47,413 nucleotides of DNA from Macrostomum lignano (GCA_002269645.1 NIVC01004392.1:1-47413), one strand, 5' to 3'. Shown: positions 8,003 through 18,871, numbered from the stretch's first letter. The notes: generated by a model from the sequence alone, not told the origin. Numbers and translations are program-made.

Positions 8003-11000
8003 TCAGATCTGATGCTCGTGCAGCACACGGGCGATCCAGTCGATGCTAGCCGTTACATTGGCGTAGATTCCCGGGTAGCCGCGCATGGCGCAGTCCTTGC
8101 CGCGGGACACGATGCCCGACACGGTCCAACCGTTGCGCTGACGACACATCAAAGGCCCGCCGCTATCGAACTCAGAGACGCGTAATGGAAATTAATGTTT
8201 TAAGTTGTACGCGTAACTCTGATTAAAGCATTATATTTACGTAGATCAGGGCCACATGGGGCCTGTAAAGCCTCTCTATCCGTCTCTCCGTGTCTCTAAT
8301 CTTATCTTTTCTCTTATCTCTTTTCTGATGCCATCTCTCGCCTCTCGCCTCTCCTCCCTCTCTCCTTTTCACTCTCATCTGGCCCGGCCTCCAGTTAAAA
8401 AAGTTTTCCAATCCCTTGGGTCGTAGATTCTCGTGGATTATCAATGCTCCTCTAGAACAGCTACTGGTTAGTAGTAGTATGATCAGTGTTTTGAAAAATA
8501 TCTGAAGAGAAATTGAGCTTGTGAAAAATTTAGGGAAACACCAGTAGTCTATCCCTGTGTCGAGGTGCCAATAACTACGAGCCGTATCCGGAATCCTGCG
8601 TCTTGTAAATATTCTTAACGTTAAGTTTTTATCAACCTGTAGGTTAAATTAAAGATATGGAGTACCTATTTATTATTTTTGTTGGGCAGCCAGCACTTGA
8701 TTGGAGACTGACCCAGTGTAAATTTACTAAATATGACCTATATTTAAACTCTGCTTGTACCCATTTTGTACCAATATAACAAGTCTTGCAACTCTCTCTT
8801 TCTTAGAAACGAAGTTTATTCTAAGAAACACTTAGAAATAAAGGAAACTAGTGTGCAGTGTTAATTACTCTTGCGAGAAAAGATATATAGTTAATTAATA
8901 GTAATGATACAAATAAAATCAATAATACTAAACTGACTCACTTGGCAAGCATCGGTTGCATAGTTCTCCCCAGCAGCGCAGATCTCCCCCGGACGTAGGT
9001 TGATCGTGTCGTTCCGATAGGCTACGGCGCAGTCGGACTCGTCGTGGATTTTCACGCTGGCGTGCAGAAGTCTCTCCGAGTGGTGCATGTCTGAAAGGAT
9101 GGAATAAATCAGCTACATACTACATACTATATACATACATACATACTACATATTTAACAACGACATATAAATAGAGCCGGTTCTCACCGAGAGAGCTGGT
9201 CTTGCCCCATCCGGCAACAACACAGTCCGTGCCGGGGACCAGTCTGTCCTGCTCCATGGGCAGGCAGGCGGGACGAACGAAGCGAGACAGAGGCACCGGA
9301 CGGCGAAGGCGCAACAGGGCCAAGTCGGGGTCCACCGATTCTTCGGCAACTAAAATTACACATGCATGAACACACGTGACTCGCAACTTTGATAGGAATT
9401 TACGGAAGCTGTAGACAATGACAGACATAAACACTGACGCCCACGTAGTAAACGCGACGAATCACTTTTTAGAAGTTAGTTTTTCATTCGATTCAATTTT
9501 TACTCCCCACTTCCTGGGTGGATAGCACAGCTGGGTAGCTTTGTTTTTTAATGCGATTGCAAAAGGTTTCGATGAGTTTCTGTTTATTTATGTAATTATA
9601 TTTTTGCATTCATCAAACACTGATTTTTTGTCCCAATTTTCAGTCCGGCAGTCACCCACTCACACGCGCTCAATTCAGTCAGTCAGTCAGTCAGTCAGTC
9701 AGTCAGTCAGTCAGTCAGTCAGTCAGTCAGTCAGTCAGTCAGTCAGTAAGTCAGTCAGTCAGTCAGTCAGTCAGTCAGTCAGTCAGTCAGTCAGTCAGTC
9801 AGTCAGTCAGTCAGTCAGTCAGTCAGTCAGTCAGTCAGTCAGTCAGTCAGTCAGTCAGTCAGTCAGTAAGTCATCAGTCAGTCAGTCAGTCAGTCAGTCA
9901 GTCAGTCAGTCAGTCAGTCAGTCAGTCAGTCAGTCAGTCAGTCAGTCAGTCAGTCAGTCAGTCAGTCAGTCAGTCAGTCAGTCAGTCAGTCAGTCAGTCA
10001 GTCAGTCAGTCAGTCAGTCAGTCAGTCAGTCAGTCAGTCAGTCAGTCAGTCAGTCAGTCAGTCAGTCAGTCAGTCAGTCAGTCAGTCAGTCAGTCAGTCA
10101 GTCAGTCAGTCAGTCAGTCAGTCAGTCAAGCCAGTCAGTCAGTTAGTCAGTCATCAGTCAGTCAGTCAGTCAGTGAGTCAGTCAGGCCTCAACAGTCAGT
10201 CAGGCCTCACCAGTCAGATTTGGAGCCAGGAAGATCTTCCGGATGGCTCTCTCCAGCTCTGTGTTGTCCTGCCGGCCGATCTCATGCTCTCCAACAACAG
10301 CAGTCCAAGCACACGGACTGTCAGCCTCAAGGTCGAGCATCAGGCTGAGGAACGAGATAAAAAATAAATTCCAGTTAAACAAATGCAAAGTCTGCTTTAA
10401 ATCGCATGTACTTGGAGCAGTATCTGCTTACCTGCGTGTCAAAAAATCGAGATCTCGGTTAGTGAAGCAGTGCTTGGCCGTGAGCACCCACTGAGGATGA
10501 ATCAGCACGCCGCCACAATAATGTCTGCCGTGAACTTTGATCTGCGTTGGGAAATCGGTGGATGGTTTCAATTTGATCGACCAGATTTTCGGGTTATGCA
10601 TTGCCTTGCATTCGTTTATCCACGTGCATTGGCATTTTTGTCTACCGCAACGAGCACTTTATTGCGAGTGCCTACCTTATACAGCTTGTCGAACACTTCG
10701 TGCAGCATTTTATTGTCGTTTCTCAGCGACACCAGCCAGGGCCACTGACCTCGCTGCGACGAAATGCCGCCAACGATTCTCTTTTCTACTGTCTCAGCTG
10801 GAGCGTTCTCAGGTGGAGCGTCGATAGCTGCGATGGCGCTCAGCAGGCTGTTCGGCGACTCGGCGATGGGCCAGTCGGCGAAGGCTTCCGGAGATTCATA
10901 GTGCGACTTGCCACAGTTGGCGAGCTGTTGGCGAATTCCTGGGGGGAGTTAGTTAGTTAGTCAGTTACTCGTAGTTAGTTAGTTAGTCAGTTAGTTAGTT

Positions 11001-16500: not shown

Positions 16501-18871
16501 GTCCTTTCGCCCTGTGCAATCTAAACTAGAGACAGTACATGTTCGCCTCACACTACTCTTAGTAATTAAAGCCGCAAGTCAGCCTCGCTCACAGCCACAA
16601 AGGATCCCCTGCTGAGAAATCCTCCAGATTGAGCCCAGAGTTCCCGATCATACCCAGTCTGGGACAGTCTGGTGCTGGAGGTCCGTCAGGTCATTGCCTG
16701 GTCATAGGCAGCCTACGGTCATTGCCCCCTCTGGTCATGCGTTCGTCTCTCAACGGAGCGGACGGGCGACAAGGGCGGTTACATCAAATGTACGAAATAA
16801 AGCAATAGAAATAAGCGATGTAAATTCCAGTTTACCATCAGTAATGACGCTGCCCCATCCAGCTATGAAGCACGAGTCTCCAGGCTTAGCGGCTTGGCCG
16901 GGGTCTTCCAGGCAGGCGGGTTGAGCATACTCGGACAGTGGCACCGGGCGACTCAGTTTGAGCAAAGCCATATCCTGGTGGTACGGCTCAGCATTTGGGC
17001 TGGCTATCGGCGGTAGTGAATGGGTTTTATGGACATATTTTTGATGCACGTGTAGGAAACAATTACTTGGTTGGATCTTGTCTTTCACATAAATCATCTT
17101 GCAAAGGTTCCTCTGATAACTTTGATAGGCGATAGAGAACTGTCATAGTGCAACAATAATACACGCAAAAGTGCCTATCATACATTTCGAACTACTCTTA
17201 CCTTCGTAAATTGGAGATAGAAATATCTTCTCAATCGGGATTTCCAGCTCCGTGTTGTCCTCTTGCAGTATTTCGTGCTCTCCGATGACAGCTAACCAGT
17301 CTTTGGGGTTACTTTTTGTCAGATATCTGACTATATTCCTGTATAAGGAAAGGTAGATGGGTGAAGTTCTGGGAAAATGACAAATGACAAGTGAATGTAC
17401 TTTTACGCTCGTAAGCCTCGTGTACAGTCGTCTTACTATCGCCCCTGTGCAGTCGTGTCTAAATCGCCCCATTGAATTATGTCAAATTCGCCCCATTCAG
17501 GCCTGTCTAAATCGTTCCATTGAATCGTGTATAAATCACTCAATTCAGGGATGTCTAAATCGCCTCATTCAGGCCTGTCTAAATCGCCCCACTGAATCCT
17601 GTCTAAATCGCCTCATTCAAGCCTGCCTAAATCGTCCCATTGAATCGTTTCTAAATCGCCCCATTCAGGCCTGTCTAAATCGCCCCATTCAGGCCTGTCT
17701 AAATCGCCCCATTCAGGCCTGTCTAAATCGCCCCATTCAGGCCTGTCTAAATCGCCCCATTCAGGCCTTTCTAAATCGCCCTATTAAGGCCTGTCTAAAT
17801 CGTCCCATTGAATCGTTTCTAAATCGCCCCATTCAGGCCTGTCTAAATCGCTCTATTAAGGCCTGTCTAAATCGCCCGCGATTTAGGCGATTTATGTCTA
17901 AATTGTTTCATTTAATCGTGTCTAAATCACTCCATTCAGGGTTGTCTAAATCGTCCAATTGAATAGTGTCTAAATGGCTGCATTCATTCCTGTCTAAATC
18001 GCCCCATACTCACATACCCAATCAAAATACTCACCTGTCATCTTTACGATACTCAACCGTGCCATCCTTAAAGCAGTGCCTCGCCGACAGAACCCATCTA
18101 GGTGAGATGAGCGCGCCGCCGCAAATATGATTCTTGTGCGGAACACCAGCAGTTGTGGCAACGAAATCGTAAAATTCGAGGTATCTACTGCGCAGCGACA
18201 CCATCCATGGCCACTCCCCGTGTCTTGACTCCCGGCCGTTGACGATTCGCTTGCCTGCGAGCCGCTCTGAGTCGTCGTCAGAGCGTCGCGGCTTCCTGGC
18301 GTCGATGCTTAAAGATTTATAGCAGACTGCCGGCCGGCTTCTGGCTGCAGGCAGTGGAAGAGAACGGCTAGCTACCGCCTACCGGTATCAATATGTTAGC
18401 TAGTTAAGAAGGTGCTGCAGTCATTCAAGCAGTGAGTGGTTGTGAGATGAGAGAAGATAAGAAGAGAGAGTAAAGGAGAGGAGAGATGAGAAAAGAGAAT
18501 ACGGAGTAAAGAAGTATGGGAGTTGAAAATAGGCACAAACCTCAAGCAGGTCGGATTGTTATTTTGAAGTTTCAAAGGACCCGATGACCGGATAGGGAGG
18601 CTTCGCGGACCGGAACGTTCCGATCCTTACACTAACGGGTTGGCAACGAGCTAGTTTACATGGCTAGTTGGCGCAAGTTACAGCGGTTCAAAGGAACCAG
18701 TTTGAATGTGATGAATAAAATGAGGCACTAATTACTTACAAATACAAAAAGGTAAAATAGTAAAACGCGATGCAATTAGAGCAAGTTCTGACCTCTATAT
18801 GACGGCACCGAGGCTTCAGTCGAATGAACAACAATGAAAACGGCAACAACAAGCAGCAGTTTTGCTGCCAT
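13574..18871 (-). CDS. Trypsin-family (S1A) serine protease zymogen 2, tandem paralog of protease 1; 6 exons
   Basis: Exons 18871-18793, 18344-18035, 17338-17202, 17003-16836, 14795-14647, 13741-13574, phases compatible. Signal peptide [74 protein letters not shown]. The last two exons have the same lengths as in protease 1 (149 and 168 nt). AATAAA on the - strand at 13516-13521. Confidence 0.93.
13840..14470. repeat. 23-bp minisatellite (GAATCGTGTCTAAATCGCCCATT)n in the last intron of protease 2
   Basis: Roughly 25 units ending in CTAAATTGCTCCATACTCAC. Same family as 17448-18013. Confidence 0.95.
14846..16295 (+). mobile_element. Putative solo-LTR-like insertion with a Pol II promoter cluster, in intron 4 of protease 2
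   Basis: Begins TGTGA and ends TCACA. Contains TGACTCA three times, TGACGTCA, CCAAT, TATTTAA and a downstream GTAAGT donor. No target-site duplication found and no coding homology. Confidence 0.35.
15693..15783 (+). promoter_or_regulatory. AP-1 / CRE / CCAAT / TATA-like promoter module, antisense to protease 2
   Basis: TGACTCA 15693-15699, TGACGTCA 15703-15710, CCAAT 15723-15727 and TATTTAA 15777-15783, in canonical order and spacing. Confidence 0.45.
17448..18013. repeat. 23/24-bp minisatellite (TCAGGCCTGTCTAAATCGCCCCAT)n in intron 2 of protease 2
   Basis: Mixed 24-bp and 23-bp units ending in CTAAATCGCCCCATACTCAC. It explains the (IQACLNRP)n ORF. Confidence 0.95.

Follow-up and report, generated by a model that had tools for sequence, protein, structure and literature searches.

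To our knowledge, Gly193 is regarded as nearly obligatory in proteases of the chymotrypsin fold, and the known exceptions, mesotrypsin and the snake-venom enzyme TSV-PA, are isolated and recent. The G193R replacement renders trypsin-1 as inhibitor-resistant as mesotrypsin, and Phe193 of TSV-PA has been proposed to give this enzyme a high substrate selectivity together with tolerance of inhibitors (PMC11511063). The schistosome enzyme SmSP4 (Smp_129230, KF510122), assigned to 'trematode SP clade 4', was described as a trypsin-like pre-pro-enzyme that is strongly transcribed in eggs and adults (Horn et al. 2014, PMC3967958); residue 193, residue 215 and the oxyanion hole are unmentioned in the cited descriptions of SmSP4. 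We report here on two neighbouring protease genes, called A and B, in a stretch of 47,413 nucleotides from Macrostomum lignano (NIVC01004392.1 of assembly GCA_002269645.1; the whole stretch is hereafter the window). Both genes are already annotated and the locus itself is a pair of ordinary S1A protease genes, whose products are ordinary S1A proteases with an unusual and conserved active-site cleft, in which Phe193, Arg215 and a basic residue 56 are found. Comparison with related sequences indicates that Phe or Tyr at position 193 is an old inherited family trait and not an innovation of Macrostomum, and the family-wide replacement of Gly193 and Trp215 appears to have gone unremarked before.

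The products of both genes comprise a signal peptide, a propeptide and one S1A serine protease domain, which spans positions 1-220 of the Pfam Trypsin profile (PF00089, curated cut-off 20.6 bits) with 182.5 bits (E 1.3e-53) for A and 167.3 bits (E 5.9e-49) for B. In the profile alignments both proteins retain His57, Asp102 and Ser195, with the triad in order, as well as Asp194, and both carry Asp189, Gly216 and Gly226, the residues of a trypsin-type S1 pocket. Both read Gln192-Phe193-Asp194-Ser195 (QFDS), and in alignments with PDB entries (E ~1e-36) this Phe faces Gly193, and an Arg faces Trp215, of TMPRSS13 and factor XIa. The three replacements and the retained residues listed in the initial annotation are all confirmed by these alignments and by the codon coordinates (Table 1), as is the dibasic KR/IV activation site that it had recognised, which reads EKR/IVGG in A and GKR/IVNG in B. 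The rarity of the replacements was evaluated in 272 triad-intact S1 domains of 135 unrelated multi-domain proteins, taken from the top 150 of a profile search over 1.84 billion representatives; these top 150 were all multi-domain polyserases, ordered by summed score, and are uninformative on the spread of the family, being reused here for residue frequencies. In this background, residue 193 is Gly in 255 domains (94%) and Tyr in 2 and never Phe, residue 215 is Arg in 1/272, and residue 56 is Lys or Arg in 0/272. The long insertion after WPW that had also been pointed out is real: the spacing from WPW to CGG measures 27-28 residues in A and B, against 11-12 in the ordinary S1 domains aligned with them. 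The stretch from His57-Cys58 to GEHE is also long (29-31 residues), and insertions of ~15 residues are found in both the 37-loop and the 60-loop of the two proteins. An extra, seemingly unpaired Cys lies at residue 168 of gene A (exon 10344-10211), within the 60-loop insertion (DSPCAW), where gene B has KSNPKDW. Serine codon classes serve as markers in studies of serine-protease evolution; the Ser195 codon is AGC, of the AGY and not the TCN class, in both genes (A 8164-8162, B 13735-13733), and that of Ser214 is TCC.

The position of Phe193 at an exon border calls for particular attention. In both genes a phase-0 intron follows the complete Gln192 codon and the last exon opens with a whole TTC (gene A, GCT TGC CAA/gtgagt ... 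tctctgag/TTC GAT AGC GGC GGG CCT; gene B, GCT TGT CAG/gtaaat ... caacacag/TTC GAC AGC GGT GGC CCT). It could be argued that this is an annotation or splice artefact, the true mRNA joining elsewhere and encoding Gly193, an explanation that we consider barely credible and for which no supporting point was found. In both genes, and likewise in all three genomic copies of the pair, the AG is followed at once, in phase 0, by the complete TTC, an arrangement that rules out a splice artefact for Phe193, and near the junction no acceptor able to give a Gly codon 193 was found in A or B. Moreover, the GenBank models of M. lignano derive from transcripts, through a genome-guided RNA-seq assembly followed by TransDecoder, and are not ab initio predictions (PMC5730564). 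An intron-less contig of 1,111 nt (SRA run SRR28338166), belonging to a related Macrostomum, encodes a protein 78% identical to A and is uninterrupted across the junction (GCC TGC CAT TTC GAC AGC GGC GGC CCG, that is DACH-FDSGGP); its alignment block begins precisely at 8170, the first base of the last exon of gene A. This congener transcript, together with the junction sequence, substantiates that Phe193 is real at the mRNA level, and the alternative junction restoring Gly193 for which the initial annotation had allowed is not borne out. The ~45 homologues that read [FY]DSGGP, many of them as short intron-less transcript contigs, argue in the same direction. The orthologue of A in the congener also possesses the extra Cys of the 60-loop.

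The tandem paralogy proposed at the outset holds: A and B are two minus-strand genes whose products are 46% identical, and with the congener protein they form a clade with 100% bootstrap in a neighbour-joining tree (100 bootstraps), the congener being the sister of A. Because A and B are paralogous, their shared residues were inherited once from a common ancestor and do not represent two independent events. Strong purifying selection acts on both genes. When A is compared with the congener orthologue, pN is 0.155 and pS 0.69, the synonymous sites being near saturation, which gives an omega of ~0.09; conservation is highest in the 41 codons that lead from Ile16 through the inserted 37-loop (pN 0.047). 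A comparison of genomic copies g3 and g1 yields omega values of 0.06 (A) and 0.22 (B), based on few differences. The subfamily maintained by selection that had been envisaged is thus supported as regards the selection, and has to be widened as regards its extent, since Phe/Tyr193 spans several spiralian phyla and is not specific to Macrostomum.

Among the aligned database relatives, DACQ-[FY]-DSGGP accompanied by Asp189 and a complete triad occurs in flatworms, nemerteans, annelids, one brachiopod and one orthonectid. The trematodes concerned are Schistosoma, Trichobilharzia, Heterobilharzia, Dicrocoelium, Paragonimus, Fasciola, Fasciolopsis, Calicophoron, Clonorchis and Opisthorchis, the cestodes Mesocestoides, Spirometra and Anoplocephala, the monogenean Cichlidogyrus, the nemerteans Tubulanus and Lineus, the annelids Owenia and Lamellibrachia, the brachiopod Lingula and the orthonectid Intoshia. 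Residue 215 is never Trp in these relatives: nemerteans, annelids and Intoshia have Thr, and Lingula, trematodes and cestodes have Phe or Tyr, Ile being also seen in the family, and Arg215 occurs only in Macrostomum A, B and the congener and in Cichlidogyrus. Lys or Arg at position 56 is found in Macrostomum and Cichlidogyrus, in the cestodes and in one of the two groups of trematodes. The combined FDSGGP and SRG signature by which relatives were to be recognised therefore comes apart, [FY]DSGGP being widespread and SRG narrow (Macrostomum and one monogenean), and the tree built alongside has deep nodes that all fall below 10% bootstrap, with 87-88% for the trematode SmSP4 group; with these deep nodes unresolved, a single origin of the aromatic residue is neither shown nor refuted.

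Further characters accompany the aromatic residue. The propeptide motif C-G-[KR]-[SN]-x-[YF] is present in 36/46 Phe/Tyr193 domains against 3/173 Gly193 domains, and a dibasic [KR]R precedes IVGG in 46/46 of the former against 22/173 of the latter, Lys-Arg being invariant at the activation site in the family alignment. Gene A has both the motif, as CGKSHY, and the KR; gene B has a degenerate C-Y-K-S-L-S in which the Cys is kept, and keeps the KR. The 37-loop, measured from WPW to CGG, comprises 16 residues in nemerteans and annelids, 27-28 in Macrostomum and 45-102 in parasitic flatworms. Enlargement of the 60-loop, alongside that of the 37-loop, is a further mark of the family. In database searches, the best matches outside Macrostomum are nemertean, schistosome and Lingula Phe/Tyr193 proteins for gene A and Trichobilharzia and Schistosoma Phe/Tyr193 proteins for gene B, and in the trimmed alignment 12 of the 13 non-Macrostomum sequences nearest to A carry Phe/Tyr193. 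It can be surmised from the ranking of best matches, the shared rare residue and the propeptide and activation-site characters that A and B likely belong to the SmSP4-type family of aromatic-193 proteases. Two groups at the border of this family deserve mention. A group of Owenia fusiformis proteins, adjoining the aromatic-193 proteins in the neighbour-joining tree, has the family propeptide motif and Arg215, yet Gly193 and Gly189, from which it follows that Arg215 has arisen or been kept more than once near the family. A Nematostella protein has Phe193 but retains Trp215, and the Gly193 profile gives it a higher score (234 bits) than the aromatic-193 family profile does (208 bits), so that Cnidaria are not counted in the family; its Phe193 is possibly convergent.

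The link to SmSP4 is provided by its quantitative PCR primers, given in the supplement of Horn et al. 2014, which encode the peptides PQWIMT (sense) and DMSVAH (antisense). Within the schistosome cluster, the proteins of S. rodhaini, S. haematobium and S. intercalatum contain both peptides, and the members of this cluster therefore correspond to SmSP4. A truncated S. rodhaini model continues with VSFS... after DACQ, as read-through of a GT-AG intron would, which indicates that the phase-0 intron before codon 193 is common to schistosome and Macrostomum. Transcripts of SmSP4 were located in parenchyma, tegument, oviduct, oocytes, vitellaria and testes (Horn et al. 2014, PMC3967958), and this presence in parenchyma, tegument and gonads leans towards a non-digestive function. 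The roles in predation, digestion or reproduction that the initial annotation had offered as speculation found no support, SmSP4 being the one relative with expression data. A literature search returned no biochemical study of SmSP4 or of its relatives.

The structure predicted by AlphaFold2 has the normal S1 fold, a double beta-barrel, with a pTM of 0.77, and Foldseek matches it to hepsin, enteropeptidase, prostasin, factor XIa and tryptase (top probability 1.00, TM <=0.91 on target length). A short helix is predicted at residues 110-120 of gene A, in the 37-loop (pLDDT ~70), and confidence is lower in the propeptide and in the two loop insertions.

We propose, with a probability of about 0.55 and by analogy with characterised enzymes, that A and B are secreted S1A zymogens of the SmSP4-type spiralian family that would act as selective, poorly inhibitable processing proteases and not as bulk digestive trypsins. 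Following secretion as zymogens, they would be cut after Lys-Arg by a kexin- or prohormone-convertase-like enzyme, or autocatalytically, and the freed Ile16 N-terminus would pair with Asp194. The propeptide would stay tethered through its Cys to Cys122; in gene A this partner is presumed to be Cys42, by homology with the Cys1-Cys122 bridge of chymotrypsin. The active enzymes are predicted from the pocket residues to cleave after Arg or Lys. Since the oxyanion hole is built from main-chain NH groups, those of residues 193 and 195, Phe193 is compatible with catalysis, as in TSV-PA. Judging from the known exceptions, the side chain of Phe193 may be directed towards S1'/S2', with the result that fewer prime-side residues would be accepted and canonical Kunitz/Kazal-type inhibitors would dock poorly. 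Arg215 would put a positive charge in place of the hydrophobic S2-S4 floor, Lys/Arg56 would add a charge next to His57, and the long 37- and 60-loops would wall in the cleft; we speculate that Arg215, Lys/Arg56 and the enlarged loops further restrict and charge it.

Several points weigh against this proposal. What it says of specificity and inhibitor resistance in the family is throughout an analogy with TSV-PA and mesotrypsin. Replacement of Gly193 in thrombin or factor XI strongly cuts catalytic efficiency, and the enzymes could consequently be slow or require a cofactor. In the AlphaFold2 model the least confident core segment is formed by residues 301-310, the 189-195 loop itself (pLDDT 67). 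As to family membership, the Macrostomum clade stands outside the main Phe/Tyr193 group in the neighbour-joining tree, with 8% support, and the family and Gly193 profiles score 267 vs 267 bits for A and 253 vs 247 for B, a tie that we read as uninformative and not as negative, the family profile being dominated by divergent parasite sequences with long insertions. Finally, a search of full-text literature and supplements returned no match for the expression or function of Mlig002336 or Mlig011230.

With Phe193 as a splice artefact rejected on the phase-0 TTC, the transcript-based models and the congener cDNA contig, the nature of the enzymes has to be weighed. They might be ordinary trypsins of broad specificity, digestive for example, with the cleavage behaviour and the inhibition of any trypsin, and the residues at 56, 193 and 215 near-neutral quirks of the family. 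All the features of a working trypsin are indeed present in A and B, and residue 215 varies freely in the family (Thr, Phe, Tyr, Arg, Ile), which suggests relaxed constraint at this position. We nevertheless regard this explanation as unlikely, because residue 193 is Phe or Tyr in essentially all family members across phyla, against Gly in 94% of the background, and such near-invariance argues for selection for an aromatic residue and not for mere tolerance. In addition, the precedents with a residue other than Gly at 193 show changed inhibitor binding, conservation between Macrostomum species extends to the enlarged 37- and 60-loops, and the relative SmSP4 is not confined to the gut.

A quite improbable alternative is that of a latent or cofactor-dependent protease, in which the bulky residue 193 disturbs the oxyanion hole and Arg215 folds into S1 and pairs with Asp189, the free enzyme being self-inhibited until a partner or a substrate opens S1. 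Latent states of this kind have parallels in the Arg218-Asp189 pair of complement factor D and in the collapsed Trp215 of the E* form of thrombin. The location of Arg215 at the mouth of the acidic S1 pocket, its retention in both paralogues and the congener, and the 189-195 loop being the least confidently modelled part of the core are consistent with such a state. It is, however, pure inference; most family members lack Arg215, which would limit the explanation to Macrostomum and the monogenean, and TSV-PA is active despite Phe193. Selective and poorly inhibitable processing proteases of the SmSP4 type remain our preferred interpretation of A and B.

A bolder hypothesis combines these elements, and we hold it to be very unlikely as a whole: the aromatic residue 193 and the loss of Trp215 would define an ancient spiralian class of S1A proteases, blind to canonical inhibitors and selective on the prime side, in which the Macrostomum and monogenean members would carry a factor D-like self-lock between Arg215 and Asp189 and SmSP4 would work unhindered in plasma. 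If it were true, the self-lock would mean an enzyme that only the right substrate or partner could turn on, and the class would include abundant blood-fluke proteases such as SmSP4 that work in inhibitor-rich host plasma.

At the level of the locus, the window has a eukaryotic character, with short exons and introns packed with repeats. The gene models were reconstructed exon by exon (Table 1): all 11 introns of A and B have GT..AG borders (11/11), the rebuilt proteins are identical to the GenBank entries, and the span 8003-18871 runs from the stop codon of gene A to the ATG of gene B, gene A being situated 2 kb downstream of gene B on the same strand. No third paralogue was detected in the window by tblastn. 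The protein of gene A is 99% identical to BOX15_Mlig002336g2, and two further copies of the pair exist in the assembly, one on a 1.01-Mb and one on a 0.84-Mb contig, which agrees with the redundancy of the M. lignano DV1 assembly that was already known (PMC5730564). Intron 2 of gene A (10675-10542) interrupts the 37-loop insertion between LYK and IKV and has no counterpart in exon 2 of gene B (18344-18035), the paralogues thus differing by one intron gain or loss.

Table 1. Coordinates of the two protease genes and of their diagnostic features, counted from the first letter of the window.
Feature	Gene	Positions	Strand	Details
Gene A (Mlig002336.g3, PAA47610)	A	11526-8003	minus	7 exons, 361 amino acids; exon-by-exon reconstruction
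Exons	A	11526-11427, 10938-10676, 10541-10432, 10344-10211, 9349-9188, 9090-8942, 8170-8003	minus	
Propeptide Cys42	A	10915-10913	minus	in C-G-K-S-H-Y motif
Activation site Lys86-Arg87/Ile88 (= Ile16)	A	10783-10775	minus	EKR/IVGG
37-loop segment, residues 102-129	A	10735-10518	minus	LVSLRNDNKMLHEVFDKLYKIKVHGRHY; ~15-residue insertion; intron 2 within
Lys56-His57	A	10475-10470	minus	AAG CAC; motif TAKHC
Phe193 codon	A	8170-8168	minus	TTC, first codon of last exon; Gln192 CAA 8944-8942
Arg215 codon	A	8104-8102	minus	CGC, S-R-G motif; Gly216 8101-8099, Gly226 8071-8069
Gene B (Mlig011230.g3, PAA47611)	B	18871-13574	minus	6 exons, 336 amino acids; exon-by-exon reconstruction
Exons	B	18871-18793, 18344-18035, 17338-17202, 17003-16836, 14795-14647, 13741-13574	minus	
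Activation site Lys58-Arg59/Ile60	B	18252-18244	minus	GKR/IVNG
37-loop segment, residues 74-100	B	18204-18124	minus	intron-less
Arg56-His57	B	18081-18076	minus	AGG CAC; motif SARHC
Phe193 codon	B	13741-13739	minus	TTC, first codon of last exon; Gln192 CAG 14649-14647
Arg215 codon	B	13669-13667	minus	CGT, S-R-G motif

An older UniRef model, A0A1I8GY99 (707 amino acids), joins gene B to gene A. This fusion requires a GT donor across the stop codon of gene B (GA/gtgaca, exon end 13578, minus strand) and an AG acceptor 31 nt upstream of the ATG of gene A (ctcag/ATTCG, exon start 11557). It may represent the read-through precursor of a single transcriptional unit in which 11557 serves as a trans-splice acceptor, M. 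lignano having numerous units of this kind (PMC5730564). Among the repeats, two introns of gene B (13844-14435, 17456-18007) are filled by related minisatellites of 23-24 bp, with ~23-26 copies each and the consensus CGTGTCTAAATCGCCCATTGAAT, and introns of gene A (9675-10203; 10947-11421) hold (TCAG)n in 133 copies and (AGTT)n in 118 copies. Elsewhere in the window, an ionotropic glutamate receptor exon lies at ~28290-28590 on the minus strand (Pfam Lig_chan-Glu_bd, E 5.9e-12), adjoined by a tandem array of 85 units of 15 bp (GCTTTAGCACCAGGG, 28586-29862) that is open in several frames. Further arrays, (GTCT)180, (TCTCTCC)87 and a 20-bp unit repeated 77 times, occupy 43-758, 34217-34818 and 45494-47031, and the long arrays near the contig ends are consistent with a short assembly fragment bounded by repeats.

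M. lignano, a free-living species for which RNA interference and transgenesis are available, is a tractable organism for the study of this family (PMC5730564). If the aromatic residue 193 acts as in TSV-PA, the enzymes would be selective and hard to inhibit, which would bear on the SmSP4-type proteases of blood and liver flukes in a host plasma rich in Kunitz inhibitors and serpins.

Among described proteases, SmSP4 shares with A and B the signal peptide, the short propeptide, the single S1 domain, Asp189, DACQ-F-DSGGP and a residue 215 other than Trp, as well as the CG[KR][SN]x[YF] motif, KR/IVGG, an enlarged 37-loop and the phase-0 intron before codon 193. The SmSP4-type proteins, SmSP4 itself being known at transcript level only, differ from A and B by an identity of 30-35%, by Ala56 and Phe215 where Macrostomum has Lys/Arg56 and Arg215, and by 55-69 residues from WPW to CGG in schistosomes against 27-28. 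The best sequence and fold matches are restricted-specificity regulatory S1 proteases with loop insertions: thrombin (60-loop), tPA (37-loop), factor XIa, TMPRSS13, enteropeptidase and hepsin. As in A and B, these insertions are in the 37- and 60-loops bordering the cleft, and a propeptide tethered to Cys122 is likely in both cases; unlike A and B, they keep Gly193 and Trp215 in the PDB alignments, and most have extra N-terminal domains, which A and B lack. Human mesotrypsin (PRSS3, trypsin-3) resembles A and B in having a residue other than Gly at 193 in an otherwise standard trypsin; this residue is, however, Arg and not aromatic, a recent change of the primate lineage in a digestive trypsin in which Trp215 and Ala56 are retained and the loops lack insertions. 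TSV-PA, the snake-venom plasminogen activator (PDB 1BQY), compared here through the literature, is an active S1A protease with Asp189 and Phe193, like A and B. It belongs to an unrelated, kallikrein-like lineage of reptile venoms in which Phe193 is exceptional, whereas an aromatic residue 193 is the rule in the spiralian family, where its maintenance across phyla together with the loss of Trp215 constitutes a natural experiment on the remodelling of the oxyanion hole and S2'.

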